Origin: Leidyana gryllorum EB-2025a | Taxonomy: Eukaryota > Protista > Apicomplexa | Direction: 5' to 3' | Length of the DNA stretch: 64,000 nt | Assembly: GCA_048772705.1 (NCBI GenBank) | Contig: JBLWGC010000141.1 | Location: 7,533 to 71,532 of the forward strand | Shown: positions 1-61,911 of the stretch, in pieces | Position numbering within the stretch: the first letter of the stretch is position 1 | Layout: the number at the start of each line of letters is the position of its first letter | Notes under the pieces: model-generated | What the model saw: only the letters and a program-made list of their open reading frames with translations | Database searches by the model: none | Told to the model about the DNA's origin: nothing | Program-made: the position numbers and the translations under genes

Positions 1-68
1 CTGTAGTGGTGACATCAGATATTCGACGAGTAAATTCCGTCCCACCGGAAGTTGATGAGTGGACTTCT

Positions 69-628
69 TGTTGTAGTTCGTGTTTGCCTGATGGTCAACT
101 TCCTATCGGGTTGCCAAATTCGACTTGGTGAAATTTCCAATCGAATTAACATCCATCTGGATACTTCCCTACATATTTGGCACTTATATAGGGGCATGTA
201 TAAGATGGTGAAAAGGCATTATTAACCAACGTAAAGCAACTACTACTAAAGCGTAAAGGCTAATGCACCCTAGTGGTCTGAACTCTCTGTGACAGTGTAA
301 CTGTGCAGACACTCGCATGAATGATCAGAGTGTGGTGTCGGGGAGAACTACCGTGTGTCCAGCGCGAGGCCCCGCAAGAGTGCGAGCGACTGGCACATGG
401 GTAGAGTGAGAGAGACACCAGAGTGAGAGACACACGTAAGCAAAGTTGGCTAAGTCAGAGTTGGACTAGGCAAGAGGCGGCCTAAGATAACTTTTGCTCT
501 TGGTACAACAAGTCGTAGTTCTTGTTTTGCGTCGTCGTGTGCGACATATTCGTGGTAGACTTGTCGGCAAAAATACTAACTTGGTTCCTAAGTCTGACTT
601 GTGGTCGAAAGTATGCAGAGATACAACA
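69..628 (+). mobile_element. Solo LTR (family A) with ~40-bp deletion near its 3' end
   Basis: TGTTGTA...TACAACA termini; near-identical to 61912-62511; flanks CTTCT/GGCAA are not a TSD. Confidence 0.88.
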
Positions 629-710
629 GGCAACTTGCCCGAGTGGTTAAGGGGGTAGACTTGAAATCTACTGGGTCTGGCCCGCGCTGGTTCGAATCCA
701 GCAGTTGTCG
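629..710 (+). tRNA. tRNA-Ser(TGA)
   Basis: GGCAACT/AGTTGTC acceptor, GTAGA-CT TGA AA-TCTAC, long variable arm. Confidence 0.9.
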
Positions 711-792
711 TGCGATCTGATTGGAGGGGCAGACAACAACTCACTCCTGAAACCCCAGAATGGTGCCTCAATCAACCATCTGCCATCTTCTC

Positions 793-863
793 TGCATCTG
801 CCGGGAATCGAACCTGGGTCGTCTCCGTGGCAACGAGACATTCTACCACTAGACCACAGATGC
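793..863 (-). tRNA. tRNA-Gly(GCC)
   Basis: GCATCTG/CAGATGC acceptor, TT GCC AC loop. Confidence 0.8.
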
Positions 864-1544
864 ATAATACCTTGTTGAGCTAGTCCCCGCGCCCGCTGCG
901 CAGACCTCATACCATTCATGGTTTTTGACATAGTATGACCAATCTCTCGACTGCGGCGCGCACCAACACAGTGACATGACAAGCGTGGGATTCGAGCCCA
1001 CGCGATTTGGAACTGCGGCCTGAACACAGCGCTTCAGACCACTCGGCCATGTTGCCGGAGTGTTGTTGGCTCGCCGCTCCACGCGTTTCCTGTCCGTGGA
1101 ATCTCGAAACTGGTAAGACGTCTGAGGCTGAAGGCCGGCGCGTTGACGATCGTCCGAGATGAAGTAGTGGTCAGTATTTCCGCCTGTCACGCGGAAGACC
1201 CGGATTCGATGCCCGGTTTCGGAGCACAGCTGATTCCGCTTAAGATTGCCGCTGAAAGTTGCGAGCTACAGTCACCGAGGATCGAACTCGGGACCTTCTG
1301 CGTGTTAACCAGACGTCGTAATCACTACACCATGGGTGCACGAAAGCTTTCCGCAGACCAAGAGGAGTTGCGAAATTTCAAGAAGTAGTGAGCACTAGTT
1401 GCGAGGTCGTGTCGGGAATCAAATCCAGGTCGGGAGATTCAAAATCTCCACAACTAACCACTGTGCCGTAGGGGGGCAGGCTGAACAGGCGGCTGTCTGG
1501 TCTGGTGGTATGATTCTTCCTCGGGTGGAAGAACATTGTAATTG

Positions 1545-1617
1545 GGTCTTGTAGCTCAGTCGGCAGAGCGTGTGGCTGTTAACCACAAAGTCGCAGGTTC
1601 GAAACCTGCCAGGACCG
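1545..1617 (+). tRNA. tRNA-Asn(GTT)
   Basis: TGTGG-CT GTT AA-CCACA, intact cloverleaf. Confidence 0.9.
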
Positions 1618-1805
1618 GGTGATGCGGCACCGTACTCTCTAGACGGCACTTGTGCTCTTGGAACCCCTTTCCAAGGTCGTAGACTTAGCCGAAATGCGAT
1701 TCTCTAGATGTCAGTTGCCCTGACTGCCCTACCGAGGTGGGCTAACGAGGTGGCTGTGTTGGTTGTGAGGGCAACTTGTCCCGTCGGGTCAACCGACGAC
1801 CAAGA

Positions 1806-1877
1806 GGGCTGTTCTGGGAATCGAACCCAGGACTCCTTCCACCCTAAGGAAGGATCATACCACTAGACCAAACAGCC
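1806..1877 (-). tRNA. tRNA-Pro(AGG)
   Basis: GGCTGTT/AACAGCC, CTTCC-TT AGG GT-GGAAG. Confidence 0.9.
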
Positions 1878-2132
1878 GACTGATCGGTGGTGCAAATTGC
1901 TGGTAGAGTCGGGAGACTGGTCATAACATGTCAAGAACCACTAAATGCTATGGGGTGTGCACAGCCGGCGACTAGCTCAAATTATGTAGCACTCGCGTAG
2001 CAGGCGAGAGATGCTGGGATCGATGCCCAGGTCGTCCAAACTTCTACCGGCTGCACCTCCGGTATCTGAAAACAGAGTCACGACCGAATGGAGTTGACGC
2101 CCGATCGCAACCATGTTTAGGCTGATGACTGA

Positions 2133-2204
2133 AGCCTCCTGTCGGAATCGAACCAGCGACCTTTCGCTTACAAAGCGAATGCTCTGCCCCTAAGCTAAGG
2201 AGGC
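2133..2204 (-). tRNA. tRNA-Thr(TGT)
   Basis: TTCGC-TT TGT AA-GCGAA. Confidence 0.85.
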
Positions 2205-2458
2205 ATTCCCTGTCTCGCCCATATGAGTTTTTGATGCTGGGAATTGCATTATTTCCACCGCATCGCACGACAACTGCTGCATTCAAACCAGCGCGGGCCA
2301 GGCCCAGTAGATTTCTAGTTTACCCCCTCAACCACTCGGGCAAGTTGCCACCTGTCGAACTCGGCATTTTGCGGCCAGTGATGTCACATACGGTTCGGCA
2401 AGCTTGACTAGGACCCCAAACCGTTGTGAAAAAGTGCCAGCGAGTAAGAGATGTCGTC

Positions 2459-7375: not shown

Positions 7376-7512
7376 CAGTTCCAGCCCTCACAACTGGTGC
7401 AACTCAGATTTTGTCGCAGCTGGTCTGGACTTCATTCGGGATTGTACGAGTGGGAGCCGCGTATAGAAGCCGACCTTGGAGGGACGCGGCATTGAGTCAA
7501 CAACTATCAGAC

Positions 7513-7584
7513 GGGCTGTTCTGGGAATCGAACCCAGGACTTCTTCCACCCGAAGGAAGAATCATACCACTAGACCAAACAGCC
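7513..7584 (-). tRNA. tRNA-Pro(CGG)
   Basis: CTTCC-TT CGG GT-GGAAG. Confidence 0.9.
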
Positions 7585-7671
7585 GGCTGTCGGTCGAGCA
7601 ACCCGCTGAGTACAGTCGAGAGAGTGGTCATACGATGTTGAGAACAAAAAAATCGATGGGGTCTGCGCAAC

Positions 7672-7744
7672 GGGCGACTAGCTCAAATGGTAGAGCGCTC
7701 GCTTAGCATGCGAGAGGTACTGGGATCGATGCCCAGGTCGTCCA
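7672..7744 (+). tRNA. tRNA-Ala(AGC)
   Basis: CTCGC-TT AGC AT-GCGAG, G3:U70. Confidence 0.9.
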
Positions 7745-8048
7745 AAGTTCGTACGGCTGCACGTGGCGGGATCCAAACAAACTTCCATCTTTGAAGGGTC
7801 GCAGACCACAAGTGCCATTGGCACACCAGCGCACTCAGTGTTTAGTGTGCCTCTGAAACCGGTCCTGGAAGGTTTCGAACCTGCGACTTTGTGGTTAACA
7901 GCCACACGCTCTGCCGACTGAGCTACGAGACCCAGCTACAATGGTTCAGAGGTTAGTATAGAGATCCTTCTTTTTCTACCACAGGATTCTGCAACCACGT
8001 CTTGTCAAGAGGTACGGCTCTCGGCTAAAGCTGCAGCTGAGGAAGTTG

Positions 8049-8121
8049 TCCACTGTAGTCTAAGTGGCTAGGATATGCGGCTCTCACCCGCACGATCCGG
8101 GTTCAAGTCCCGGCAGTGGAA
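8049..8121 (+). tRNA. tRNA-Glu(CTC)
   Basis: TCCACTG/CAGTGGA, TGCGG-CT CTC AC-CCGCA. Confidence 0.92.
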
Positions 8122-8719
8122 ATCCAGCTGAGTGTGCTTGTAGGCAACAGTTCCATTCTTACTCCCATGGAAATAGATCCACACCGCCCGCGGGGCTCGA
8201 ACCCGCGACTGAATGATTAAGAGTCTTGCGCTCTACCGACTGAGCTAGGGCGGCAGGAATGCAAGGACACAAAGCCCGATAGCCTGACATTTGAAGTGGC
8301 TCCGCTCCCACAGCTGGTACCCACAGGTCGTTCGCGTGGCAGGCGGGACTACTCTTTGATACCATGTCGGAGGCGCGTGACCCCCAACGTTAGAGCCCAG
8401 CCTTTCCATTCTCTAGCTTCAAACAGACAGGGAACGCTTGAAGTGGCGGGACAGAAACCGAGCTGGTAAGATGGCTGAGGGGTCTAAGGCGCTGTTTTTA
8501 AGTCGCACTCCGAGAGGACGTGGGTCCAAATCCCACTCTTTTCAGGTAGCGCCTCACACGGGAAAAACAAATAGTCTGATTGAGCCCAGAGTGATTCGAA
8601 AACCCAACCTTCTGATCTGGAGTCAGACGCGCTACGTTCCGCCATAGGCCCAAAACCATCCCCCGCTCCAGACTCATTGCCTTGTGGTCCAACATCTCCG
8701 ATCGTTCCAAACCATCTTC

Positions 8720-8791
8720 AGGGCACGCGCGGAGTTGAACCACGGACTTGCTGATCTGCAGTCAGCTGCTCTACCACTGAGCTACGTACCC
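8720..8791 (-). tRNA. tRNA-Cys(GCA)
   Basis: GCTGA-CT GCA GA-TCAGC, U73. Confidence 0.9.
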
Positions 8792-9828
8792 ACAAAATAC
8801 CCGTCATACTCGCTCAACTCGTTTTTTTTTCTCATTTGAAGCAAAACGGCCGTTATTGTGCACGAGCTTGAACAACAACGAGTGATGCATCTGTGGTCTA
8901 GTGGTAGAATGTCTCGTTGCCATCGAGACGACCCGCGTTCGATTCCCGCTAGATGCAGAGGACATAGACATACATGATTTAGTGCCAATCAGACACTGGC
9001 GGACAGCTGTAGCACTCGCAGGGACATATGTGACGGCGCAGCGCCGAATGGGCGTGGATCCAAATCCCATCCTTGTCAGGATAGAACTTGGGATTTTCTT
9101 TCCTGCGTGTGAAGCAGACGTCGTAAGCAGTAGACCATGGCTGTACGGAGCTTCCGGGCCGTGAACGGGGCGTATGTCTTTCGACACACGTATCCGATGA
9201 GCCTCACAGAAGTTGGACGGCCTGGAGTAGCTCATTTAGAGAGCATCTAACGCTCCTGTTACATTTCATCCTGATTGATGCCCCACTGCCTTGATAGCTA
9301 CTTGCAGATTGTCCGAGTCGTCTAGTGGTTGGGACAGCAAGTTGTGGCCGTGCGAAGCCAGGCTCGATTCCCGGCTGAGGCACCCACAGGGGGCTGTTTG
9401 GTCTAGTTACATGATTCTTTCTTCGGCTGGAAGAAGTCCTGGGTTCAATGCCACGTCTCTCCAAGGTCGGCTACTATACGCGGCTCCCACTCGTACAATC
9501 CCGAATGAAGTCCAGACCAGCTGAGACAAAATCTGAGTTGCAGCAGTTTTGAGGGGCTGGAACTGCTCGGACCGGGAATCGAACCCGGGTCTTCCGAGTG
9601 ACAGGCGGAAATACTAACCACTATACTATCTCAAATGCTCTGAACACGCCGGCCTCCAACCCCAAAAGTTCTTCCATTATGAGATTCCAAGCACAGAAAA
9701 CGCGTGGAGCGGCGAGCCAACAACATCCCGGCAAGATGGTCGATTTGTCTAAGCGCTGTGCTCAGACCGCAGTGCGACAGGGCGAGGATCTGGGGTTGAG
9801 CCTTTCGAACCCCGGAGCAGTTGGACGG

Positions 9829-9908
9829 CCGGGGGTAGCTCAGTTGGTAGAGCATCTGACTGTAGTGCTGGCATCAGATAGTCGGCGGTTCGATTCCGTC
9901 CCACCGGA
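9829..9908 (+). tRNA. tRNA-Tyr(GTA) with 7-nt intron (9866-9872)
   Basis: TCTGA-CT GTA G[tgctggc]A-TCAGA; G5:A68 acceptor mismatch. Confidence 0.85.
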
Positions 9909-10555
9909 AGTAGCAATGTGGTTTCGGCAGACAGCGTTGATAGGCCAAGTAGACTACTCCGGCGAACATTCCATCGATGTAACTCGGATGGGCTGGGAAT
10001 CGATCCCAGTACCTTTCGTATAGTAAGCCACCGTTTCGTCATCTGGGTTAGCCTACCTCGTGGCATTGAGTGATACTTCACGTAGTGAGACGAGTCTCTC
10101 GACTTTGCCCAGCTGGTTGAACCACCGGCTAGCGGCTGTTTGGTCTAGTGGTATGATTCTTCCTTCGGGTGGCAGAAGTTCTGGGTTCGATTCCCAGAAC
10201 AGCCCTATTGGTCGTCAGTGGATCCGACGGGACAAGTTGCCCCCAGAACCAACACAGCCACCTCGTTGGCCAGGCCCAGTAGATTTCTAGTCTACCCCTT
10301 GAACACTCGGGCAAGTTGCCACCTGTCGAACTCGGCATTTAGCGGCCAGTGGCTTCACATACGGTTCAGCAAGCTTGACTCGGACTGCTGGCGCTGCCCG
10401 AACCCGCGGTCTCTCCATTGAAAGTCTGGCGCTCTACCGACGGAGCTGGCGCGGCAGGGAAGTGAGGACTTCATAACACGTACCTTTCGTATTGGTCGCA
10501 GAATGTTGGGGGTTGCTGGAGTCCAGGGCGACTCTTTATCGAAGATCCACTCACT

Positions 10556-10629
10556 TGGTCACGCCCGGGCTCGAACCGGGGACCTTGAGCTTATTAGGCT
10601 CACGCTCTGACCGACTGAGCTACGCGACC
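10556..10629 (-). tRNA. tRNA-Ile(AAT)
   Basis: TGAGC-CT AAT AA-GCTCA. Confidence 0.9.
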
Positions 10630-12099
10630 ACTTCTGCCACGACAGATGGCACCGACCCGGATGCTGGATCCCACCTCAGCTGGACTCAAACATCTCAGAC
10701 ACTAGCGGACAGCTGGAATCCACTCTTCTCAGGTGGCGCCCCGTACGAGTTAGTCGGCGCTTCCGATGCCGACCGTGGGAGTGGGGAGGATTGAACTCTC
10801 GACTTCAGGATTATGAGACCTAGGCGCTACCGACTGCGCTACACTCCCTCGTGAAACTTCTCTCGATGCATCTCTTCCTGTCAAAAGGGTGCAGAGGGAT
10901 GCTCCATCAACAACACACCCGCCCAGTTGGGCCGGCGCTTGACCGCGAACTTGGAACTTATCAGGCTCACCCTTTAAGTGACCGAAAATAGGCAGAGTTG
11001 AGGTAAACACTCACTGGACCAACTAGCCGACTGATGTGCTCCGCAAAACCACCACGATTGGCCTTCCTCCACCCCGCCAAACAGTCATTCCAGAGCCAAA
11101 TACTGACATTTAGAAGGGGCTATACCCACATCACTAACAGTTTGCACGGGATTCCCGACGAAAGGTATGATCAATTACACTCTTGGCAAGGTGGCCGAGT
11201 GGTTAAGGCGGCGGCCTGCTAAGCCGTTGGGTTTCACCCGCGTGAGTTCGAATCTCACCCTTGACGGTAGCATTCGCGGAGAGCGTGCTTCAATGATTGT
11301 CCGACTCAAATAGAACGCTCTACGCTGGGCGCTATATACAGGAGCCAATTAATTATTTCAGCGGTCAGTAGAGAGACTCGTGTTGCGTGTGTTCATTTGA
11401 GAAAGGGCTAGTCCGGATAGTTCTACCGACTCTTCAGGGATGGGCTGAAGCGGTTGCGTGGTGAGTGGTTAGCACTGGAGACTCTGAATCTCCCGACCTG
11501 GGTTCGATTTCCGGCGCGACCTTGGAACTGGTCTTCACTGCTCCGTAAAACTTCGCCACTCCTCTTGGGCTGCGGGGCCCATTCATGCAGTCAACGGTTT
11601 AGTGGTTACGACGTCTGCTCAACACCCAAAAGGTCCCGAGTTCGGTCCTCGGTGGCTGTAGCTCGCGACGTTCAGCGAGAACTAAAAGAGAGAATCTTCA
11701 GCGAAGCCATCTGTGCCCCGAGACCGGGAATCGAACCAGGGTATGCCGCGTGACAGGCGGAAATACTGACCACTATACTATCTCGGGCGCTAGTAAACTC
11801 GCCGGCCTCCAACCCCAGAAGTCCTCGCATTTTGAGATTTCACCGAGAGGAAATGGGTGGAACGGCGAGCCAAGAACACTCCGGCAAGATGGCCGAGTGC
11901 TGTGTGCAAGCCGCCGTCCGAAATGCGGGCAGAGGATCGCAACCATGTTTAGGCTAATGACTGAAGCCTCCTGCCGGAATCGAACAGCGACCTTTCGCTT
12001 ACAAAGCGAATGCTCTGCCCCTAAGCTAAGGAGGCATTCCCTGTCTCGACCCATATGAGTTTTTGATGCTGGGAATTGCATCATTTCCACCACATCGCA

Positions 12100-12181
12100 C
12101 GACAACTGCTGGATTTGAACCAGCGCGGTCCAGGCCCAGTAGATTTCGAGTCTACCCCCTTAACCACTCGGGCAAGTTGCC
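12100..12181 (-). tRNA. tRNA-Ser(CGA)
   Basis: GTAGA-CT CGA AA-TCTAC. Confidence 0.85.
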
Positions 12182-13329
12182 AACGGTAGAACTCGGCATG
12201 CCGCAGGCAGTGGCTTCACATACGGTTCAGCGAGCTTTACTAGGACTCCTCGCGCTGTCCGAACCCGCGGTCTCTCCATTGAAAGTCTTGCGCTCTACGG
12301 ACTGAGCTAGGGCGGCAAACGAAGCTCTAGACTTAGTTACACCCTATTTGCCGTTGGGCGGAGCAGTGGAAGTCATTGGACCGGTGGAACAATGTGCTTC
12401 AGTAACTTCCGTTAACATTGCCTTCTTAGCTTGTGGCAGAGCATCCGCTTAGTAAGCGAAAGGTCGCCGGTTCGATTCGGGCAGAAGGCTTACAACTGTT
12501 CCCTTCTGCGCACACTTAGCAGTGCGTCGTTTCGATCGACGGACCTTTGGGTTATGAGCCCAACACTCTTCACTGAGCTACACTGCTTAGTTTGCAACAT
12601 GGAAGAGGGAGCCGAAATGCGATTTTTGAGAGGTTAGTTGCGCTGACTGCCCTACCGAAGTGGGCTAACGAGGTGGCTGTGTTGATTCAGAGGGGACCTC
12701 GTTCCGTCGGGTCAACCGACGACCAAGAGGGCTGTTCTGGGAATCGAACTCAGGACTCTCTCCACCCTAAGGAAGGATTATACCACTAGACCAAACAGCC
12801 GCCTAGCCGGGGTTCAACCCGCTGGGTACAGTCGAGAGACTCGTCTCACTATGTGAAGTCTTACTCAATCCCATGAGGTGGGCACAAAGGGAGGCTAGCC
12901 CAGATGATGAGACGGTGGCTTAGTATACGAAAGGTTCTGGGATCGATTCCCAGCCCATCCAAGCTACATAGATGGAACCCTCGCCGGAGTAGTCTAGTTG
13001 GCCTATCAACGCTGTCCATCAGGTTGAGTAGTAGTTTGCCGATCACCCCTCTACTTCCGGTGGGACGGAATCGAACCGCCGACTATCTGATGCCAGCACT
13101 ACAGTCGGATGCTCGACCAACTGAGCTACCCCGGCCGTCCAACTGCGCCGGGGTTCGGAAGGCTCAATCCCAGATCCTCGCCCTTTCGGACTGCGGTCTG
13201 AGCACAGCGCCTCAGACAACTCGGCCATCTTGCCGGGATGTTGTTGGCTCGCCGCTCCACGCGTTTTCTATCCTTGGAATCTCAAAATGGAAGGACGTTT
13301 GGGGTTGGAGGCCGGCGTGTTTGCGAGCG

Positions 13330-34448: not shown

Positions 34449-34521
34449 TTCCACTGCCGGGACTTGAACCTGGATCGTGCGGGTGAAAGCCGCATATCCT
34501 AGCCACTTAGACTACAGTGGA
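34449..34521 (-). tRNA. tRNA-Glu(TTC)
   Basis: TGCGG-CT TTC AC-CCGCA. Confidence 0.85.
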
Positions 34522-35083: not shown

Positions 35084-35163
35084 GGCAAGATGGCCGAGTG
35101 GTCTAAGGCGCTGTGTTCAGGCCGCAGTCCGAAAGGGCGTGGGTTCGAATCCCACTCTTGTCA
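35084..35163 (+). tRNA. tRNA-Leu(CAG)
   Basis: Intact cloverleaf. Confidence 0.9.
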
Positions 35164-35227
35164 GCCGTTGAATAGGCAGTCGGTCCCCTAAGTTCACTGA
35201 TAGACCGTCGTTCAAGCTACATACGGC

Positions 35228-35298
35228 TGCACCTGCCGGGACTCGAACCCGGGTTACGACCTTGGAAGGGTCGCATCTTACCCTTAGACCACAAGTGC
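35228..35298 (-). tRNA. tRNA-Gly(TCC)
   Basis: Intact cloverleaf. Confidence 0.9.
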
Positions 35299-35521
35299 AA
35301 TTGCGAAAGAGCCGCAGCACCCCGAGAGATTCGGGCGATTTCTGCGTCGAGCTGTCTGCAACCTACAAAAAACGGACTGTTCGGGAATCGAATCGAACAC
35401 TCCCCCAGGCGAGGGAAGAATATACAACTAGCACTTCAACTCGACATGGGCGGCAGTGGGTCCCCATACAGCTAGCAAGCTTGCCTCGGCCAAAACGGAA
35501 CGGATTCCGAGTGAGAGGCTG

Positions 35522-35594
35522 TGGTGCGGATGGGACTCGAACCCACAACTCCCGGTTCCGAAGACCGATGCCCTATCCATCAGGCCACCGCACC
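35522..35594 (-). tRNA. tRNA-Arg(TCG)
   Basis: GGTGCGG/CCGCACC, TCGGT-CT TCG GA-ACCGG. Confidence 0.88.
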
Positions 35595-42209: not shown

Positions 42210-45200
42210 TCGGCGACCTTTCGCTTACTAAGCGAATGCTCCCCTAAGCTAAGAAAGCAATACAGGGCGAAGATCACGAATGAGTCACTGTTGACGGGGA
42301 TTACTGGAGCACTTCGCTCAAGTAGCTTCCACTGCCGGGACTTGAACCCGGATCATGCGGGTGAGAGCCGCATATCCTAGCCACTTAGACTACAGTGGAC
42401 AAGTGCCCGAGTTGAGGCTTTGGGCGAGACCCGTACCATCTTGAGATGAGGTGGAGCGTCGGGTCAACCTGTCGATCAGTGAAATGAGGGGACCACCTCC
42501 CAATACAGGCTGACAAGCGTGGGATTCCAGCCCACGCGATTTAGAAGTGCGGCCTGAACACAGCGCTTCAGACCACTCGGCCATGTCGAGTAAGTGGTCA
42601 TACTATGTTGAGAACCAACACATGCGACGGGTCCGCATAACAAAAAGGAGGGTCTTTTGGGGTTGGAGGCCGGCTTGTTCAGAGCGTCCGAGATAGTATA
42701 GTGGTTAGTATTTCCGCCTGTCACGCGGAAGACCCGGCTTCCATTCCCGGTCTCGGAGCACAGTTGGTTCCGCTGAAGATTGTCTCCTGTGGTTGCCGCT
42801 GAAAGTTGCGAGCTGCCACCGAGGATCGGACTCGGGACCTTCTGCGTGTGAAGCAGACGTCGTAACCACTAGACCATGGCTGCACGGCTGTTCCCGCAGA
42901 CCAAAGCAATGGCGAGGTTTTACGAAGTAGTGAGGACTAGTTCCAAGGTCGCGAAGGCAATCGAACCCAAGTCGGGAGATTCAAAGTCTCCAGTACTAAC
43001 CACTACACCACGAATCAGCCCTTCTTCAAGAGTTGATTGAGCCATCCGGACCGGAGCTTCCCCACACATGCAAAACGGGTTCTTCTACTAACCTCCAAAT
43101 ATTCAACTGGCTCTCGCAGCGCAGTCGGCAAAGCGTGTGATTGTTAAATACCAAGTCGCAGGTCCGCGGTCTACGGCATCCTGGACCATATTGCGATGCC
43201 AAAGTCGATCCAAGGGCTACAGGGCACCCTTCATAGGTCGTAACTCGTGGCTAAATACCGGCAGGTGCCGTCGTACGAAGTTTGGACGACCTGGGCATCG
43301 ATTCCAGTACCTCCCGCATGCTAAGCGAGCGCTCTACCATTTGAGCTAGTCGCCCGCTGTGCAGACCGCATCGCATTTCTTGGTTCTCGACATAGTATGA
43401 CCACTCTCTCGACTGCACCCAACGGATTGCACCACCGACAGGCGGCTGTTTGGTCTAGTGGTATGATTCTTCCTTCGGGTGGAAGAAGTCCTGGGTTCGA
43501 TTCCCAGAACAGCCCGCTTTGTTGTATCTTGACCCAACCTGCCTGGCAGCATGGTTCTGGGTTCGGGTGATTCCTCGGAGAAAGTCGGAGGGGGAGTGTA
43601 GCGCAGTCGGTAGCGCGTAGGTCTCATAATCCTGAATTCGAGAGTTCGATCCTCTCCACTCCCACGGTCGGAATTGAAACCGCCGACAAACTCATCATGC
43701 TATCGTTTTGCATCTGTCGGGAATCGCACACAGGTTATCTCGATGGCAGCGAGCGACTCTTCCACTAGACCACAGATGCAGAACACGATCTTGTGAATCT
43801 TGCGCGTGGTGACAGCCATTCCTCTTAAGCCTATCGATGCATCAAAGCCTTCTGCCGGAATCGAACCGGCGACTTCTCGCTGACGAAGCGAACGCTCCGC
43901 CCCTAAGCTGAGAAGGCAATGTAAGCCGGGTATGACGAAAAAGCGCTATCGACGGAGATTAGTGGAGCACTTTGCTCAAGTATTTAAATGACTTCCACTG
44001 CCGGGACTTGAACCTGGATCGTGCGGGTGAAAGCCGCATATCCTAGCCACTTAGACTACAGTGGACAACTTCTTCAGCTGCAGCTTTGGACGAAAGCCGT
44101 ACCATCTCGAGATGAGATCTTTTTGCACTTCCCCAGATTTGAAACCGCCTCGTATCGAGCGCGCGTCGTCTCAATGGCACGGAAACATTCGAGCCCTTGA
44201 CCGCATTTATTTCCAGTCCCAATGGCTTCACTCACTCTTTTGAATCTTGGTCGTGAATGGTTCCGTGTTGTAGTGGTTAGCACTGGAGACTTTGAATCTC
44301 CCGACCTCGGTTCGATTCCCGGCGCGACCTCGCAACTAGTCATCACTACGTCTTGAAACTTCGCAACTTCTCTTGGTCTGCGGAAAGCTTTCATGCAGCC
44401 ATGGTCTAGTGGTTACGACGTCTGCTTAACACGCAGAAGGTCCCGAGTTCGATCCTCGGTGGCTGTAGCTGGAACATGTGAAGTGAGCTCCACCCAAAGC
44501 GAGGAAACGTGCTGTCTTCGAGACAGGGCATCGAACCCGCGTCTTCCGCGTCTTCAACCCTAGAAGTCTTCCTTCTCGAGAACTTCACGGACAAAAACCG
44601 CGTGGAGCGACGAACCAACAAGACTGCGGCAAGATGGCCGAGTGGTCTAAGGCGCTGTGTTCAGGCCGCAGTCCGAAAGGGCGTGGGTTCGAATCCCACT
44701 CTTGTCAGCCCGAACGGTAAAGCGCTCGTTGGCATGGGTCGGTACCCAGGTCGTCCAATCTTACCGGAACTCGAGTTTGGCACCGCGGAGCACCCCGGAT
44801 CTGCTTCCACAGAGAGGAAACGCGTGGTTGGCGGGAGCGTCACCGAGCTGGCAACATGGCCGAGTGGTCTGAGGGCACGTGCGCAAGCCGCGGTCCGAAT
44901 GGGCGTTGGTTCGAATCCCACTCTTGTCAGCCGTTGAATAGGCAGTCGGTCCCCTAAGTTCACTGATAGACCGTCGTTCAAGCTACATACGGCTGCACCT
45001 GCCGGGACTCGAACCCGGGTTACGACCTTGGAAGGGTCGCATCTTACCCTTAGACCACAAGTGCAATTGCGAAAGGGCCGCAGCACCCCGAGAGATTCGG
45101 GCGATTTCTGCGTCGAGCTGTCTGCAACCTACAAAAAACGGACTGTTCGGGAATCGAATCGAACACTCCCCCAGGCGAGGGAAGAATATACCACTAGCAC

Positions 45201-46389
45201 TTCAACTCGACATGGGCGGCAGTGGGTCCCCATACAGCTAGCAAGCTTGCCTCGGCCAAAACGGAACGGATTCCGAGTGAGAGGCTGTGGTGCGGATGGG
45301 ACTCGAACCCACAACTCCCGGTTCCGAAGACCGATGCCCTATCCATCAGGCCACCGCACCATGGATAAGCTTCGGTCATCTCGATACTGGTTGGGTGAAA
45401 GGAGTATTTGATCTCAAAACCTCCCCCAAACCGTTGTTAAAAGTGCAGCGAGTAAGACATGTCGCTGGCAACCTCGGGGCGGCACGGACGCGGCGCATTC
45501 TGATACTCGATGTGACGACCTCTTTGCCTCGCCGGCGGATCGAACACGGAACTTCCAAGTCTTGTCTAGCGCTCTCTAACTGAGCTTCCTGCGCGCGAGA
45601 AAGTCATGGAGCGCGGTGAAGATGAGTGACCCACCGCATGTGCGAGCCAGTCTTGCCAAACCGTATGTGAAGCCGCTGGCCGCAAAATGCCGAGCTCGAC
45701 AGATGGCAACTGGCCCGAGTGCTCAAGGTCTGAGTATGCACGCGGTCGGCCTCAATGTGGCGCCTGACTTTGCCAGCCTGTAACCCTGCACACCCCATAG
45801 CATTTGGTTCTTGACATGTTATGACCAGTCTCCCGACTCTACCAGCAATTTGCACCACCGATCAGTCGGCTGTTTGGTCTAGTGGTATGATCCTTCCTTA
45901 GGGTGGAAGGAGTCCTGGGTTCGATTCCCAGAACAGCCCTCTTGGTCGTCGGTTACCCGACGGGACAAGTTGCCTTCAGAACCAACACAGCCACCTCGTT
46001 AGTCCACCTCCGTAGGGCAGTCACGGCAACTAACATCTAGAGAATCGCATTTCGGCTAAGTCGACGACCTTGGAAAGGGGTTCCAAGAGCACAAATGCCG
46101 TCTAGAGAGTACGGTGCCGCATAACCCGGTCCTGGCAGGTTTCGAACCTGCGACTTTGTGGTTAACAGCCACACGCTCTGCCGACTGAGCTACAAGACCC
46201 AGCTACAATGTTTCAGAGGTTAGTATAGAGATCCTCCCTTATTCTACCGCAGGATTCTGCAATCACGTCTTGTCAAGAGGGTACGGCTCTCGGCTAAAGC
46301 TGCAGCTGAGGGAGTTGTCCACTGTAGTCTAAGTGGCTAGGATATGCGGCTCTCACCCGCACGATCCGGCTTCAAGTCCCGGCAGTGGA
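42210..46389. repeat. Second copy of the ~4-kb direct duplication
   Basis: Near-identical to 32665-36620. Confidence 0.9.
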
Positions 46390-46806
46390 GAGTGTGCTTG
46401 CAGGCAACAGTTCCATTCTTACTTCCAGGGGATATAGATCCACTCCGCCCGCGGGGCTCGAACCCGCGACTGCAAGATTAAGAGTCTTGCGCTCTACCGA
46501 CTGAGCTAGGGCGGCAGGAGAGCAAGGACACAAAACCCGATAGCCTGACATCTAAAGTGGCTTTGGTACCCACCAGCCTCACATAGAGACGAGTCTCTCG
46601 ACTGTACCCAGCGGGTTGAACCACCGACAATGTGGCTGTTTGGTCTAGTGGTATGATTCTTCCTTCGGGTGGAAGAAGTCCTGGGTTCGATTCCCAGAAC
46701 AGCCCGTCTGATAGTTGTTGACGCAACACGGCACTCGACCCATCCCGAACAGCTAAGACAGGATCTGAGTTGTTGACTCAACAGGCTGCAACCCGGGCAT
46801 TCGCCC

Positions 46807-46879: not shown

Positions 46880-48078
46880 GACTAGCGGAGCCGTCAAATG
46901 GAAGTGTGTAGCGATCAAGACGACATGGGCAGCTACGCTCGATGGTGGGTCTGGACAGACTTCACCCACATCTCCCATTCGAGACATCGGGGACATACTA
47001 TCCAAGCCAGGATTCGGGCCTGGGTATGCAGGGCCACAACTTGCTGTTGTAAGCACCTAGACGACCCGGACAATCTTCAAGTGAGGCTGGTGGGTACCAA
47101 AGCCACTTAAGATGTCGGGCTATCGGGTTTTGTGTCCTTGCATTCCTGCCGCCCTAGCTCAGTCGGTTGAGCGCAAGACTCTTAATCTTGCAGTCGCGGG
47201 TTCGAGCCCCGCGGGCGGTGAGCATCTATTTCCCTGGGAGTAAGAATGGAACTGTTGCCTACAAGCACACTCAGCTGGAGTTCCACTTCCGGGACTGGAA
47301 CCCGGATCGTGCGGGTGGGAGCCGCATATCCCAGCCACTTAGACTACAGTGGACGAGTCACAACAGTTGCACTGACGAATGATGCGCCAGAGAAGTGTGA
47401 CTCGGTCTCAGATTGGAAGTTCACCTAGGTTTGGCGGGTGGGTGGCTATCTCAAGTGGTAAAGCGGTGACTTTGCACGCGAGAGGTCAGTTTAGACATCT
47501 ATCAATGCCGCAGGGCAGGCTGAACATGGGGGGTTCGATTCCGGGCGCGACCTTGGAACTGGTCCTCACTACTCCCTGAAACTTCGCCACTTCTCTTGGG
47601 CTGCGGGGACCATTCATGCAGCCACGGTCTAGTGGTTACGACGTCTGCTTAACACGCAGAAAGTCCGAGGTGAATCCTCGGTGGCTGTAGCTCCCACGCT
47701 CTAGTGGTTACGACGTCTGCTTAACACGCAGAAAGTCCGAGGTGAATCCTCGGTGGTGTAACTCCCAACTTTCAGCGAGAACCAAAGGAGAGAATCTTAA
47801 GCGAAACCACCTGTGCTCCGAGACCGGGAATGGAACCGGGGTCTTCCGCGTGACAGGCGGAAATACTAACCACTATACTATCTCGGACGCTCTGGACACG
47901 CCGGCCTCCAATCCCAGAAGTCTTTCTATTTTGGCTCACGGACAAAAAACGCGTGGAGCGATGAACCAACAACACTGTCGCAAGATAGCCGAGTTGTCTA
48001 AGGCGCTGTGCTCAAGCCGCTGTCCGAAAGGGCGAGGATCTGGGGTTGAGCCTTTTGAACCCCGGAGCAGTTAGACGG

Positions 48079-50816: not shown

Positions 50817-51826
50817 TCTGGGTTGTCGGTTGACCCGATGGGATAAGCAGTTTTAGAAGTAACACAGCCACCGCGTCGACACTCAAGGCAATTAACATCT
50901 CAAGAATTGCATTTCGGCTACCTCTTCCATGTTGCAGACTAAGCAGTGCAGCTCAGCGGAAGAGTGTTGGGCTCATAACCCAAAGGTCAGTCGATCGAAA
51001 CGACTCACTGCTAAGTGTGCGCAAAAGGGAAGCAGTCTAGAATAGATCGGCTCGTGACCAAAGCCTTCTGCCGGAATCGAACCGGCGACCTTTCGCTTAC
51101 TAAGCGAATGCTCTGCCCCTAAGCTAAGAAGGCAATGCAAGCCGAAGATCACGAAACAGTCTCTATTGACGGAGATTACTGGACCACAAGCACACTCTGC
51201 TGGATTTCCACTGCCGGGACTTGAACCCGGCTCGTGCGGGTGAGAGCCGCATATCCTAGCCACTTAGACTACAGTGGACAACTTCCTCAGCTGCAGCTTT
51301 GGACGAAAGCCGTACCATCTTGAGATGAGATGGAGCGTCAGGTCAATCGACAAGCAACGGGGCTGTTCTGGGAATCGAACCCAGGACTTCTTCCACCCGA
51401 AGGAAGAATCATACCACTAGACCAAACATCCGCCTGTCGGTCGTGCAACCCGCTGAGTACAGTTGAGATAGTGGTCATACTATGTTGAGAACCAACAAAT
51501 GCGATGGGTCTGCACAACAAAATGGAAGGACTTTTGGGGTTTCAGGCCGGTGTGTTCGGAGCGTCCGAGATAGTATAGTGGTTAGTATTTCCGCCTGTCA
51601 CGCGGAAGACCCGGGTTCGATTCCCGGTCTCGGAGCACAGTTGATCTGGCTTAAGATTGTCTTTTTTGGTGCCCGCTGAAACTTGCGAGCTACAGCCACC
51701 GAGGATCGGACTCGGGACCTTCTGCGTATTAAGCAGACGTCGTGACCACTAGACCATGGCTGCAGAGAAGGTCCCGCAGACCACGAGAAGTGGCGAGGCT
51801 TCACGGAAAAGTGAAGACCAGTTTCG

Positions 51827-51898
51827 AGGTCGCGCCGGGAATCGCAGCTAGGTCGGGAGATTTAGAGTCTCCAGTGCTAACCACTACACCACGTAACC
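51827..51898 (-). pseudogene. tRNA-Gln body with CTA (amber) anticodon, damaged T-arm
   Basis: GGAGA-CT CTA AA-TCTCC; T-stem and T-loop mismatches. Confidence 0.75.
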
Positions 51899-56166: not shown

Positions 56167-56768
56167 TGTTGTAACCCCAAGTCGCTACTCAAGGGGAACG
56201 AGGCCCAGTTCTCACCTCTGCATACTTTCGACCACAAGCCAGACTTAGAACCAAGTTAGTATTTTTGCCGACGAGTCTACCACGAATATGTCGCACACGA
56301 CGGCGCAAAACAAGAACTACGACTTGTTGTACCAAGTGCAAAAGTTATCTTAGGCCGCCTCTTGCCTAGTCCAACTCTGACGTAGCCAACTTTGCTTGCG
56401 TGTGTCTCTCGCTCCGGTGTCTCTCTCACTCCCCCCATGTGCCAGTCGCTCGCACTCTTGCGGAGCCTCGCGCTGGACACACACGGTAGTTCTCCCCGAC
56501 ACCACACTCTGATCATTCATGTGAGTGTCTGCACAGTTACACTGTCGCAGCGAGCTCAGACCACTAGGGTGCATTTGCCTTTACGCTTTAGTAGTGGTTG
56601 CTTTACGTTCGTTAATAATGCCTCTTCACCATCTTATATATGCCCCTATATAAGTGCCAAATATGTAGGGAAGTATCCAGATGGATGTTAATTCGATTGG
56701 AAATTTCACCAAGTCGAATCTGGCCACCCGATAGGAAGTTGACCATCAGGCAAACACGAACTACAACA
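56167..56768 (-). mobile_element. Solo LTR (family A) with 5-bp TSD
   Basis: TGTTGTA...TACAACA termini; CCAGT at 56162-56166 and 56769-56773; reverse complement of 61912-62511. Confidence 0.95.
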
Positions 56769-57974
56769 CCAGTTATGGGGTTTTGCTGTGCACATCACTC
56801 GCTCTTTCGGCTAGTGACTGTTCACCTCAACTCTGAAGCGGTCACATATTCCAGTCGGTTAGAGCGTGAGCCTGATAACTTCCGAGTCCGCGACTGGAGC
56901 CCGCGCGTGACCAAGTGAGTGGATCTCTGATACAGATTCGCCCTGCACCCGAGGAAGGCCCAAGATTCCACGATCAATACGAATGGAATTTGTTACTAAG
57001 TCCGAGCTTCGTTGCCGCCCCAAGTCCGTCGGTAGAGCGCCAGACTTTTTAAGGGAAAACCGCGGCTTCGCGCCGCGCGAGCAGTCCTAGTCAAGCTTGC
57101 TGAACCGTATGTGAAGCCACAGGGCGCAAGATGTGCTGGATCTACACTAGTTCCTCACTCGGGCAAGTTGGCAACTGTCGATTCCGTCATGCTGCGAGGA
57201 GTGGGCTCACATACGGCCGCGATAAGTGCTTATTTTCACCGCCTTCCATGACTACCTACCGCCTCGGTAGCTCAGTTGGGAGAGCGCCAGACTGAAGATC
57301 CACGGCTGAGGCAAAGAGGTTGTGACATTCGGTGTCATTCCTCGCACCCCTGCGAGCCTTCTGCCCTCCATCAGATACCTGTTTCCAGAGACACACGCCG
57401 CTTTCACAGTCCGGAAGCTCCGTGCAGCCATGGTCTAGTGCTTACGACGTCTGCTTCACACGCAGAAGTTCCCGAGTTCGATCCTTGGTGGTTGTAGCTC
57501 GCAACTTTCAGCGAGAACCAAAGGAGAGAATCTAAGCGAAACCAACTGTGCTCCGAGACCGGGAATCGAACCCGGATCTTCCGCGTGACAGGCGGAAATA
57601 CTAAACACTATACTATCTCGGACGCTCCGAACACGCCGGCCTCCACCCCAAAAGTCCTTCCATTTTGAGATTCCAAGGATAGAAAACGCGTGGAGCGGCG
57701 AGCCAACAACGTCCGGTGAAGATGGTCGAGTGGTCTAAGCGCTGTGCTCAGAGCGGAGTCCGAAAGGGGGTGGGTTCGAATCCCAATTTTGTTTTGTCAG
57801 ATTGCGCCCTCAACGGGAAAAACATAGTCTGATTGAGCCCAGAGTGATTCGAACACCCAACCTTCTGATCTGGAGTCAGACGCGCTACCGTTGCGCCGTA
57901 GGCTTAAAACCATCCCCATTGCCTTGTGGTCAGGAATTGAGGTCCAACATCTCCGATCGTTCCAAACCATCTTC

Positions 57975-59705: not shown

Positions 59706-59777
59706 CTCCGAGACCGGGAATCGAACCCAGGACTTCTTCTACCCGAAGGAAGAATCATACCACTAGACCAAACAGCC
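59706..59777 (-). pseudogene. Chimeric tRNA: Pro(CGG) 5' part joined to Asp 3' end
   Basis: GGCTGTT...TT CGG GT...GGGTTCGATTCCC then GGTCTCGGAG; acceptor cannot pair. Confidence 0.85.
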
Positions 59778-60195
59778 GCCTAGCTGGTGGTTCAACCCGC
59801 TGGGTACAGTCGAGAGAGTGGTCATACGATGTTGAGAACAAAAAAATGCGATGGGGTCTGCACAATGGGCGACTAGCTCAAATGGTAGAGCGCTCGCTTA
59901 GCATGCGAGAGGTACTGGGATCGATGCCCAGGTCGTCCAAACTTCGTACGGCTTCACCTGCCGCTATTTATTTCCCGAGCTGAGATAATTGTGCCTTGTA
60001 GCCCTTGGACAGACCTGGGCATCGCAGTATGTGTGAAGGTTGCCTCAGAGCCCGGATTTCCGAGTTTGTAATTTACAAACACACACTCTGCCGACTAAGA
60101 CACAAGAGCAGTAGAGAGACGCGTGTTGCATGTGTCCAGTTGAGGAGCGCTAGTCCGGATGGCTCTACCAACTCTTTTTCGGGAAGGACTGAATC

Positions 60196-60267
60196 GGTTA
60201 CGTGGTGTAGTGGTTAGCACTGGAGACTCTAAATCTCCCGACCTAGCTTCGATTCCCGGCGCGACCT
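60196..60267 (+). pseudogene. tRNA-Gln body with CTA (amber) anticodon
   Basis: CTA at 60229-60231; T-stem CTAGC/CCCGG has 2 mismatches. Confidence 0.75.
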
Positions 60268-60676
60268 CGAAACTGGTCTTCACTTTTCCGTGAAGCCTCG
60301 CCACTTCTCGTGGTCTGCGGGACCTTCGCTGCAGCCATGGTCTAGTGGTCACGACGTCTGCTTAACACGCAGAAGGTCCCGAGTTCGATCCTCGGTGGCT
60401 GTAAGTCGCATTTTTCAGGTGAGCACCACGAAATCTAAAGCGGAAAAACTAAGTGTCTCCAAGACCGGGAATCGGGTCCTCCCTTCTCGACACTTCACGA
60501 AAAGAAAACCTGTCAAGTGGCGAGCCAAGAACACTCCGGCATGATGGCCGAGTGGACCAAGGCGCTGTGTAAAGGCCGCAGTTCGAAAGGGCGTGGGTTC
60601 GAATCCCCCTCTTGTCAGCCGTTGTATCACCACTCGGTCAGCCACTGATGCAATGGGTCTTCCATGTAGAGCGGAT

Positions 60677-60749
60677 GGGCGGCTAGCTCAGATGGTAGAG
60701 CGCTCGCTTTGCATGCGAGAGGTACTGGGATCGATACCCAGGTTGTCCA
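60677..60749 (+). tRNA. tRNA-Ala(TGC)
   Basis: TT TGC AT. Confidence 0.88.
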
Positions 60750-61553
60750 AACTCAGTAGGCCGGCACCTGCCGGTGGTTAGATACAGAGTTGCGACCTCT
60801 AAGAGAGAGTTGGACATCGCAGCTCCCGGTACTGCCAGGCTTCGAAACTGCGACTTTGTGGTGAACAGCTACACGCTTTGCCGACTGAGCTACAAGACCC
60901 AGTTGCAATGTTCTTTTGAGCGAGGAGAAATCTTACCTTCAGACCAAACAGCCCCCTGGTCGGCCTGCCCAGCTACGGCACTGATAGGTGTCAAATCGGT
61001 CCGCATCTCAAGAACCACGTTTCCGCTTCCTGCATGATATCCGACGCTGGAGTAGTGGAACTCAGTGCGAGAGTGTTGGGCTTATGACTGCAGGGTCCGA
61101 GGTCTCCCGCAACACGGGTCTCTACTGATCTCTGAAATATTTCAAGTGGCTCCTGTATATAGCGCCCAGCGTAGAGCCTTGGATTTGGGTCGGACAAAGC
61201 AGTTGCGCTTTTTCCCGAATGCTACCGACAGGGGTGAGATTCGAACTCACGCGGGTGTAACCCAACGGCTTAGCAGGCCGCCGCCTTAACCACTCGACCA
61301 CCTTGCCGAGAGTGGAACGGGCTACGCCTTCCATCGGGAATCCCGTGCGAATTGGTAGATTCTTACTCCCAGAGACATTGACTTGCACCGCCCGCGGGGC
61401 TCGAATCCGCGTCTGCAAGATTAAAAGTCTTGCGTTCTACGGGCTGAGCTAGGGCGACAACGAAGCTTTATAACTGCCGGACCCCGTTCTCGACAGCCGT
61501 TTAATGGGCGCTTGGTCAGCCACTGGATGCAATAGCCCCTCATCTGTGCGTCT

Positions 61554-61626
61554 GGGCGGCTAGCTCAGATGGTAGAGCGCTCGCTTTGCATGCGAGAGGT
61601 GCTGGGATCGATACCCAGGTCGTCCA
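61554..61626 (+). tRNA. tRNA-Ala(TGC)
   Basis: Intact cloverleaf. Confidence 0.88.
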
Positions 61627-61714
61627 AACTCCATGCAACTTTGGCTGCAGAGAACCGGCTGGCGCTGGTCCAAAAATGTGAATGTTGTCATCTCAATCTA
61701 CTCGAAAAGCCGCG

Positions 61715-61787
61715 GCCTACGTGGCGCAATGGATAGCGCGTTGGACATCTAATCCAAAGGTTGCGAGTTCGTGTCTCGCCGTAGGTA
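61715..61787 (+). tRNA. tRNA-Arg(TCT), possibly pseudogene
   Basis: TTGGA-CA TCT AA-TCCAA (A33), TTCGTGT T-loop. Confidence 0.7.
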
Positions 61788-61852
61788 ACCAAATGCTCAG
61801 CCCTTTACTTAGATGATTTGGCTGACTCCAGCTGCTTCGCTGTGGAATGTTG

Positions 61853-61911
61853 TCCACTGTAGTCTGAGTGGCTAGGATATGCGGCTCTCACCCGCACGAT
61901 CCGGGTTCAAG
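61853..61911 (+). pseudogene. tRNA-Glu(CTC) interrupted in the T-loop by the LTR retrotransposon
   Basis: ...CCGGGTTCAAG is followed directly by the LTR start TGTTGTAG. Confidence 0.9.

Follow-up and report, generated by a model that had tools for sequence, protein, structure and literature searches.

A patchwork array of tRNA genes on both DNA strands, and the genome-wide array family to which it belongs, in the apicomplexan Leidyana gryllorum EB-2025a

The stretch of DNA analysed here (the window, 64,000 nucleotides, positions 7,533 to 71,532 of contig JBLWGC010000141.1 in assembly GCA_048772705.1) carries a dense array of tRNA genes in which intact and decaying copies of nearly all families are interleaved on the two strands. 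We think it probable that the window belongs to a patchwork family spread through the genome, and that these arrays are the organism's main, working pool of tRNA genes, which turns over by birth and death and also accumulates chromoviruses.

ARAGORN identified 240 tRNA genes in the window, and a run that permitted introns again gave 240 once a single false call of 549 nt had been removed. The Rfam search returned 242 matches to RF00005 at or above the gathering score (29 bits), 150 of which score at least 53.8 bits, and all 109 Rfam matches within 33,850–64,000 are tRNA. The genes use both strands, as the first-pass annotation had claimed, with 121 on the plus and 119 on the minus strand; their density is about 4 per kb, their median spacing is 133 bp, and their bodies make up 29% of the DNA. 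When the tRNA set was compared with the masked spacers by local BLAST, 103 further pieces were found, either degenerate full-length copies or truncated ones. Because these pieces bring the total to about 340, the earlier description of about 300 tRNA-like units, intact mixed with decaying, holds. The decoding set of the window covers all 20 amino acids, both initiator and elongator Met, and 43 anticodon classes (about 40 had been estimated), including the mutated anticodons CTA (two copies, derived from Gln-CTG) and Val-GAC (two copies). No gene for Ile-TAT, Val-TAC, Leu-TAG, Pro-TGG, Sec or Leu-TAA was found in the 64-kb window. The absence of the first five had been reported and is correct for the window, but the same contig carries a Leu-TAG gene some 1.3 kb upstream, and Ile-TAT, Pro-TGG and Val-TAC are present in arrays on other sampled contigs.

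No ordinary protein gene had been noticed in the array, and, consistent with this, the 10 longest open reading frames gave no Pfam match above any family's cut-off; a search of 1.84 billion representative proteins gave no homologue of the longest (236 aa). The proposed extent of the array, 1–61,911, was right in describing a dense run of tRNA genes. However, position 1 is not an array boundary, as the array continues for 7.5 kb upstream to the start of the contig with 33 more tRNAs, and three LTRs lie within the proposed coordinates or at their right edge (Table 1). The contig ends in repeats at both sides.

Table 1. Coordinates of the features described in the window
Feature	Position	Strand	Remarks
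Array spacer carried over from upstream	1–67		Uninterrupted counterpart of a site that has an LTR insertion on contig C123
Solo LTR of chromovirus, rearranged	68–628	+	Internal deletion of ~40 bp; without target-site duplication; shares 96% identity with the 5′ LTR that starts at 61,912
Patchwork tRNA gene array	629–61,787		240 tRNA genes and 103 fragments/pseudogenes; aperiodic; without protein gene
Largest recent duplication, arm 1	7,508–12,337		Inverted copy of 27,576–32,402; 4.8 kb; 98.9% identical (self-BLAST)
Inverted duplication of 4.8 kb, arm 2	27,576–32,402		Self-BLAST
Direct duplication of ~4.2 kb, copy 1	32,655–36,816		97.9–99.2% identical to 42,201–46,574 (self-BLAST)
Direct duplication of 4.2 kb, copy 2	42,201–46,574		Self-BLAST
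Solo LTR of chromovirus within array	56,167–56,769	−	Flanking 5-bp target-site duplication ACTGG
tRNA-Glu-CTC, 5′ portion (~60 nt)	61,853–61,911	+	T-arm cut by retrotransposon; 98% identical to nt 1–60 of Glu-CTC genes
5′ LTR, Ty3/gypsy chromovirus	61,912–62,511	+	600 bp, TGTTGTA...TACAACA; element runs off contig end
Primer-binding site	62,514–62,526	+	Complementary over 13 nt to the 3′ terminus (+CCA) of array tRNA-Phe-GAA
Start of gag ORF	63,649–64,000	+	Runs off window/contig end; homologous to a 407-aa ORF upstream of pol in sampled sequence L010

The array is assembled from a restricted number of modules, each consisting of a tRNA gene and its flanks, that have been repeatedly copied, inverted, truncated and re-joined at the DNA level. 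Self-BLAST placed 87% of the array within intra-window repeats of at least 300 bp that take in the spacers. Repeat hits were inverted (118) nearly as often as direct (127). Identity between duplicated modules is 78–99%. The number of distinct neighbouring gene pairs was 137, compared with 226 when the gene order was shuffled, and the mean run of genes on the same strand was 1.75. The array had been described as lacking a fixed period, and two measures agree: TRF detected no array period, its sole find being one local 72-bp duplication, and the offsets between direct repeats favoured no particular value.

The array units are real eukaryotic nuclear tRNA genes of the Pol III type 2 class, with a cloverleaf that contains the A and B boxes. 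A34 outnumbers G34 by 152 to 3 across the eight families concerned; CCA is not encoded, and follows only about 5% of the tRNA genes; tRNA-Tyr has a 7-nt intron 3′ of the anticodon; and the initiator Met carries A1:U72 and a GGG/CCC anticodon stem. The stems are perfect in 44% of the genes and have at most one mismatch in 74%, with two or more in the remaining 26%, and copies occur at all stages from perfect to broken, which is birth and death. Sequence divergence shows that the tRNA bodies are constrained, their rate being 0.37–0.62 times that of the spacers. Heterogeneity among copies is nevertheless very high: in the sampled arrays the 47 copies of Asp-GTC fall into 29 variants. Changes relative to the main variant of a family fall evenly across all arms, the pattern expected of neutral decay.

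What is surprising about the array is that its tRNA genes have neither an oligo-T terminator nor an upstream box, unlike the genes for U6 and 5S that lie within the arrays or alongside them. A TTTT sequence lies within 40 nt downstream of 13.6% of the array tRNAs, compared with 20% in the antisense control, and runs of at least four T in the +1 to +25 region were found at 5.0% of the genes, compared with 5.7% for A-runs; by this measure T-runs at array tRNAs are no more frequent than in controls. Nor was an A/T-rich (TATA-like) box found upstream of the array tRNAs. Both elements are present at the U6 and 5S genes, where the terminators are T6 and T4, respectively. Given the scarcity of T-runs and the missing upstream box, efficient Pol III expression of single units is not assured.

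A single domain of more than 60 kb had been proposed from the window alone. The arrays are instead a genome-wide family: modules of the window recur, differently ordered, on no fewer than 12 other contigs. Samples from other contigs match 92% of the window array at a median identity of 94%, and 180 kb sampled from 16 contigs, the window's own among them, contained 666 tRNAs. The exact B-box sequence occurs 3,967 times in the assembly, compared with 33 times in a reversed control. By extrapolation from this exact B-box count, the tRNA genes of the 15.5-Mb assembly would number about 8,800 and take up about 2.4 Mb, or about 15% of the genome; a first look with RF00005 gave 11,591 rough candidates genome-wide. 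There are many short array contigs, and in one place an array adjoins a gene-bearing contig of 553 kb. The genome is compact and intron-poor, with apicomplexan markers, and may be that of a gregarine. No tRNA was seen in the first 10 kb of 10 sampled large contigs or in a 10-kb interior stretch of another contig (C140), and pattern searches on large, gene-rich contigs gave about 4–5 terminator-bearing tRNA-like sites, a count limited to genes with a T-run and a canonical T-loop, as the patterns demanded both. No telomere repeat was present at the sampled contig ends. In independent data, a JGI metagenome contig of a related organism carries, within 2 kb, five tRNAs distributed over the two strands. 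A search of the literature found no paper describing a scrambled, two-strand tRNA array layout of this kind.

A young, tRNA-Phe-primed chromovirus inserts into the arrays and accumulates there. The right edge of the array is its 5′ LTR, which cuts a tRNA-Glu gene, and at the left the last base of the rearranged solo LTR abuts nucleotide +1 of tRNA-Ser-TGA. The end of the window is 98.6% identical over 2.1 kb to a full 7.2-kb element on another contig (C72), in which Pfam domains for protease, reverse transcriptase, RNase H, integrase and chromodomain follow in that order. The element is classed as a Ty3/gypsy chromovirus by its LTRs, primer-binding site, gag, order of pol domains, chromodomain and 5-bp target-site duplications. 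Its 600-bp LTRs are bounded by TG...CA, the two LTRs of an element are 98.8–99.7% identical, and at least 43 LTR copies, 96–100% identical, exist genome-wide, with matches almost confined to small repeat contigs. Target-site duplications of 5 bp were found at five of the insertions examined, including some inside arrays. Distances from insertion site to closest tRNA were 64, 149 and about 180 bp; other insertions lay within a tRNA (nt ~60) or, on C140, far from any tRNA. Among about eight sites, no Ty3-like placement at a constant, short spacing upstream of tRNA genes was seen. The match between the primer-binding site of this active element and the array tRNA-Phe means that an RNA ending in that 3′ sequence is produced.

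One interpretation of these results, and the one we favour, is that intact copies would each load TFIIIC and Pol III through their internal A and B boxes. Since almost no copy has a downstream oligo-T terminator, the transcripts probably extend into adjacent units, from which the tRNAs would be released by RNase P and RNase Z; the many weak or dead copies would be offset by the high copy number. The few terminator-bearing dispersed sites, the tRNA-free samples of gene-rich contigs and the match of the primer-binding site to tRNA-Phe together suggest that the arrays are needed as a source of tRNA. An additional chromatin or structural role of the arrays is possible. The earlier proposal of a birth-and-death reservoir that also serves as a landing pad for retroelements agrees well with modules at 78–99% identity, the 103 decayed copies, the 26% of genes with at least two stem mismatches, the constrained bodies and the LTRs with 5-bp duplications.

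Alternatively, the arrays might be mainly a structural or heterochromatic satellite, either (peri)centromeric or a TFIIIC/condensin platform, in which most copies are silent relics and a minority of them, with a few dispersed genes, supplies tRNA. We regard this as unlikely, though worth keeping in view. It would account for array tRNAs without the terminators and upstream boxes seen at U6 and 5S, for variation spread evenly over the arms, and for the many pseudogenes and fragments; at least four tRNA-like sites with canonical T4–T5 runs on gene-rich contigs, and LTRs found almost only on small repeat contigs, also fit. The chromodomain of other chromoviruses directs integration to H3K9-methylated chromatin, and the integrase chromodomain of the element that accumulates in the arrays is therefore a hint, though only a hint, in the same direction. 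However, the tRNA bodies are 2–3 times better conserved than the spacers, and the dispersed terminator-bearing candidates are too few to decode all codons. In addition, the A and B boxes are no more conserved than the rest of the tRNA, which argues against a pure TFIIIC-binding role, as such a role predicts extra conservation there. In a more specific and more doubtful version, the (peri)centromeric repeat of this apicomplexan lineage would itself consist of Pol III gene arrays: as the units lack terminators and are opposed on the two strands, read-through would yield overlapping sense and antisense RNA that could feed small-RNA- or H3K9me-based silencing, which would recruit the chromodomain integrase, and a small open subset would supply all tRNA.

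Two other explanations concern how the sequence itself arose. An artefact of assembly or amplification, in which repeated reads were mis-joined into a chimera, might be suspected from a contig with repeats at both ends and from the many short array contigs, but we find this hardly credible. Most paralogous modules are just 80–95% identical and therefore easily told apart, and the longest near-identical repeat is 4.8 kb; clean 5-bp duplications around insertions, and a paralogue in which the site is still empty, are the marks of biological events; an array joins the 553-kb gene-bearing contig (C43); and the independent metagenome contig has the same local layout. It is equally far-fetched that the units are tRNA-derived, SINE-like retroposons spread by reverse transcription rather than by DNA duplication, even though an active source of reverse transcriptase is present and truncated tRNA copies are many. 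Copies are homologous through spacers and several genes, over as much as 4.8 kb; the downstream composition is flat, without an A-rich tail, and there is no periodic unit; and the tRNA-Tyr copies retain the intron, which RNA-mediated copying of mature tRNA would lose.

Apicomplexans are the textbook case of a minimal tRNA gene set (Plasmodium and Cryptosporidium have about 45 genes), and a relative with thousands of tRNA genes in about 15% of 15.5 Mb would overturn this picture. It would also be a third case, differently built, next to Entamoeba and Phytophthora. Scrambled strands and the lack of oligo-T raise the question of how Pol III stops and how tRNA ends form, for which the U6 and 5S genes within or adjoining the arrays are built-in positive controls. 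The arrays offer a natural test of whether tRNA gene arrays organise chromosomes and of how a chromovirus picks its landing sites; if the (peri)centromeric reading were true, one repeat family would be both chromosome scaffold and tRNA factory.

Clusters of mixed tRNA families on two strands exist on zebrafish chromosome 4, at human 6p22 and at the centromere flanks of S. pombe; those of zebrafish accompany 5S and snRNA genes, and those of S. pombe sit at heterochromatin borders. Compared with the present arrays, the vertebrate and S. pombe clusters are much smaller or much less dense, and every gene in them keeps an oligo-T terminator of its own. To our knowledge, none of the three fills a comparable share of a compact genome.

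The tRNA genes of Entamoeba lie in 25 regular tandem units of 1–5 genes each, with short-tandem-repeat spacers (Tawari et al. 2008, PMC2652664). The likeness is that another Pol III gene lies in or beside the arrays (5S in Entamoeba, U6 and 5S here; PMC2652664), whereas the window array has no period, uses the strands equally, interleaves all isoacceptors, and has spacers of complex sequence with decayed tRNAs and inserted LTR retrotransposons. Phytophthora infestans has about 11,000 tRNA genes that grew by unequal crossing-over (Matson et al. 2022, PMC9584435), and it resembles the present case in having thousands of tRNA genes in a GC-moderate, intron-poor protist. Its arrays are tandem repeats of a single gene or of dimeric or trimeric units, with periods of, for example, 513 nt or 850 nt, and about two-thirds of the families lie on one chromosome of a 219-Mb genome (PMC9584435); the present arrays are scrambled, mix all families and take up about 15% of a 15.5-Mb genome. 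The authors of that study likewise ask whether the arrays organise chromatin (PMC9584435). A regular tandem array of the Entamoeba or Phytophthora type is ruled out here by the lack of a period and the use of both orientations. In prokaryotes and phages, a tRNA array is defined as at least 20 tRNA genes at no fewer than two per kb (Tran et al. 2015, PMC4758250), a density that the window reaches with a near-complete decoding set. Those arrays, however, are single-strand operons of bacterial-type tRNAs, and such an identity is ruled out by the use of two strands and by the eukaryotic tRNA features (A34, the Tyr intron and those of the initiator). The contrast drawn in the first-pass annotation, with the regular tandem arrays of Entamoeba on one side and the single-strand operons of bacteria and phages on the other, is thus borne out by an aperiodic array of eukaryotic tRNA genes divided 121 to 119 between the strands.

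We identified 240 tRNA genes between positions 629 and 61,787 of the window with ARAGORN, and the Rfam tRNA model gave 242 matches above its gathering score; in the re-scanned half of the window (33,850 to 64,000), all 109 Rfam matches were to tRNA. The genes are split 121 to 119 between the two strands, form same-strand runs with a mean length of 1.75 genes and lie at a median spacing of 133 bp, with 29% of the DNA residing in tRNA bodies. When the genes were masked and the spacers were searched with the tRNA set, a further 103 degenerate or truncated pieces were found. The first-pass annotation, which had described about 300 units with intact and decaying copies together, is thus borne out, as is its claim that all 20 amino acids and both Met types are represented. 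The tRNA genes are of the eukaryotic type, because A34 exceeds G34 in the relevant anticodon families (152 versus 3), CCA is not encoded, tRNA-Tyr carries a 7-nt intron, and the initiator Met, found along with the elongator Met, is eukaryote-like. Two copies derived from Gln-CTG, at 51826-51898 (-) and 60196-60268 (+), carry the amber-reading anticodon CTA. Other single-base anticodon mutants are Val-GAC in the window and Asp-ATC, Cys-ACA, Gly-ACC and Phe-AAA in other arrays.

The absence of ordinary protein genes, also claimed from the sequence, agrees with the finding that none of the 10 longest ORFs of the window had a Pfam match passing the family cut-off. The longest, an orphan ORF in a tRNA-free gap, probably is not a gene, since no Pfam family was assigned to it and a search of 1.84 billion representative proteins yielded no homologue. 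Position 1 had been taken as the start of the array. This did not hold, because the array goes on to the start of the contig, and the preceding 7.5 kb contain another 33 tRNAs, including a Leu-TAG. The right edge, on the other hand, is real: the 600-bp 5' LTR of a chromovirus (a Ty3/gypsy LTR retrotransposon) starts at 61,912 and severs a tRNA-Glu-CTC after approximately nucleotide 60.

Features of the window and of related contigs. Positions are those of the window unless preceded by a contig number (C) of the same assembly.
Feature	Position	Strand	Remarks
Window within its contig	C141:7,533-71,532	forward	contig of 71.5 kb
Rearranged LTR copy within the array	68-628		abuts nucleotide +1 of tRNA-Ser
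Local tandem duplication, 72 bp, degenerate Val-type tRNA	47622-47767		sole tandem repeat found by TRF in the window
Solo LTR within the array	56,167-56,769		5-bp target-site duplication ACTGG
Orphan ATG ORF, 236 aa	58441-59151	-	longest in the window; inside a 950-bp tRNA-free gap
Internally deleted chromovirus copy, 4.9 kb	C26:21500-27900		integrase and chromodomain kept
U6 snRNA genes, multi-copy, in tRNA arrays	C215:4773-4876; C4:1936-2039; C27:13340-13443		also on C38, C61 and C66
5S rRNA genes (two found)	C73:5623-5742; C157:4912-5031		TATATATA-like (TATA-like) box upstream and TTTT directly downstream in both
tRNA-like 3' ends followed by T5, large gene-rich contigs	C230:1499803 (Gly-GCC); C230:1088307; C202:192629; C104:807105		unlike array copies

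Repeats of at least 300 bp within the window, spacers included, account for 87% of the array. The largest are a 4.8-kb inverted duplication (98.9% identity) and one in direct orientation (about 4.2 kb, 98-99% identity), and shorter repeats of 80-95% identity are numerous. Neither orientation predominates among the repeats, with 127 direct and 118 inverted. Only 137 distinct neighbour pairs were observed, as compared with 226 in shuffled gene order, which indicates that gene neighbourhoods recur. Neither TRF nor the offsets of the direct repeats revealed a period, in agreement with the initial reading that the array has none. These results demonstrate that the array was made by long-running segmental duplication, inversion and deletion at the DNA level. 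Origin by retroposition or as a tandem satellite was rejected, given that the repeats include the spacers and that there is no period. We also rejected the idea that breakpoints fall within intact tRNA genes, as 29% of the long-repeat ends lay in tRNAs (±5 bp) versus 33% expected, with no enrichment. The truncated pieces, or half-tRNAs, which are numerous, nevertheless mark some old breaks.

Arrays of this kind are not confined to the window. The assembly comprises 15.5 Mb in 237 contigs, and 10-kb samples from seven other contigs contained 33-46 tRNAs each; three of three such samples from the first 50 kb of the 553-kb contig C43 were array throughout. Eleven 10-kb samples from large gene-rich contigs contained no tRNAs. 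Approximately 110 kb of samples from other contigs matched 92% of the array in the window with a median identity of 94%, in short, differently ordered blocks only. The exact B-box GGTTCGANTCC occurs 3,967 times in the assembly and 33 times in a reversed control. Scaling the exact B-box count by the sampled arrays gave an estimate of about 8,800 tRNA genes, occupying about 2.4 Mb (15% of the assembly). This gene number is of the same magnitude as the 11,591 candidates from a rough first look.

The chromovirus is a 7.2-kb element encoding protease, RT, RNase H, integrase and a chromodomain, and its LTR is present in at least 43 copies of 96-100% identity in the genome. Four further insertions, on other contigs, also have a 5-bp target-site duplication, and the spacer at the start of the window is an empty-site paralogue of an insertion on C123. 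The element is young, because the two LTRs of a single element share 98.8-99.7% identity. Its targeting does not resemble that of Ty3, since the insertion sites examined showed no fixed distance from tRNA genes. The internally deleted copy on C26 has LTRs of 99.7% identity and an intact target-site duplication, CTGAG, and contains no ORF of at least 150 aa for gag, protease or RT; it may be a non-autonomous derivative that moved recently. Three metagenome contigs (12-27 kb) with relatives of the chromovirus Pol carried 0-3 tRNAs and no arrays.

The sampled array tRNAs (666 from 180 kb over 16 contigs, that of the window included) were poor in the expected Pol III signals. TTTT was found within 40 nt downstream of 13.6%, as compared with 20% in the antisense control, T-runs were no commoner than A-runs, and no A/T-rich box was found upstream. 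By contrast, each of the U6 genes embedded in the arrays, for which a first look gave 588 candidates, terminates in T6, and a block of about 80 nt is conserved upstream of them. The 5S gene on C157 lies beside an array, about 120 bp from its tRNAs. Genome-wide pattern searches that required a T-run after a T-loop gave about 65-70 sites, nearly all from a few array modules, and only about four to five plausible dispersed tRNAs on large contigs. The T5-bearing sites on C230, C202 and C104 may be dispersed canonical tRNA genes.

How, then, are the copies used? We lean toward the interpretation that the array is a working birth-and-death pool of tRNA genes. The tRNA bodies diverge at 0.37-0.62 times the rate of the spacers, the stems are perfect in 44% of the genes, and the dispersed genes found are too few to decode all codons. 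Furthermore, the primer-binding site of the chromovirus, which pairs with 13 nt at the 3' terminus of the tRNA-Phe encoded in the array itself, indicates that array-type tRNA-Phe is expressed. Transcripts of the array would probably read through, with RNase P and RNase Z doing the trimming. The main alternative, which we consider less likely, is a structural or heterochromatic repeat that is for the most part silent. The heterogeneity of the copies, the two or more stem mismatches in 26% of the genes, and the even distribution of differences between copies across all arms speak against function. A role solely as TFIIIC sites was rejected, since it would be expected to conserve the A or B box selectively and neither showed this.

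The tubulin genes of this genome lack introns, and we found 16 matches to alveolin repeats and 6 ApiAP2 domains. The alpha-tubulin is unusually divergent, with 63-69% identity to ordinary ones; its best-scoring chains are presumably those of Toxoplasma. The nearest relatives are encoded on a Logan contig (90%) and on a contig labelled Dermatophagoides farinae (77%; JAMLFS010000011.1 of GCA_024713945.1, 645 kb), the latter probably belonging to a related parasite within the mite assembly. A look-up of the beta-tubulin in a protein atlas did not narrow the taxonomy. The markers suggest an apicomplexan, possibly a gregarine. Phytophthora or oomycete affinity, to which GC content and tRNA number had first pointed, was rejected on account of the genome size of 15.5 Mb, the alveolin and ApiAP2 domains, the very divergent tubulins and the regular tandem form of the P. 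infestans arrays. No match to the fungal marker Zn2Cys6 was found in the genome, in a search that control genomes did not validate.

The JGI metagenome contig Ga0116230_10145542 has an exact 43-mer of tRNA-Glu in common with the window and carries, within 1,975 bp, five tRNAs distributed over both strands. Their bodies are 89-99% like those of the window and the spacers are unalignable. The same layout is thus present, in independent data, in a related organism. A protein search for arrays of relatives with a spurious array ORF gave no match. The sequencing runs found shared only 5-7% of words with the window, which fits conserved tRNA bodies, and none contained it.

Our literature search yielded no paper on arrays of this kind in gregarines or any other apicomplexan. 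In size and Gypsy content, the genome is similar to the 14.0-Mb genome of Gregarina niphandrodes (PMC9141347). The tRNA arrays of Entamoeba are built of regular units whose spacers are short tandem repeats (PMC2652664), those of P. infestans consist of mono-, di- or trimeric units in tandem (PMC9584435), and bacterial arrays are single-strand operons (PMC4758250). By the tests of period and orientation, the array in the window differs from all three.
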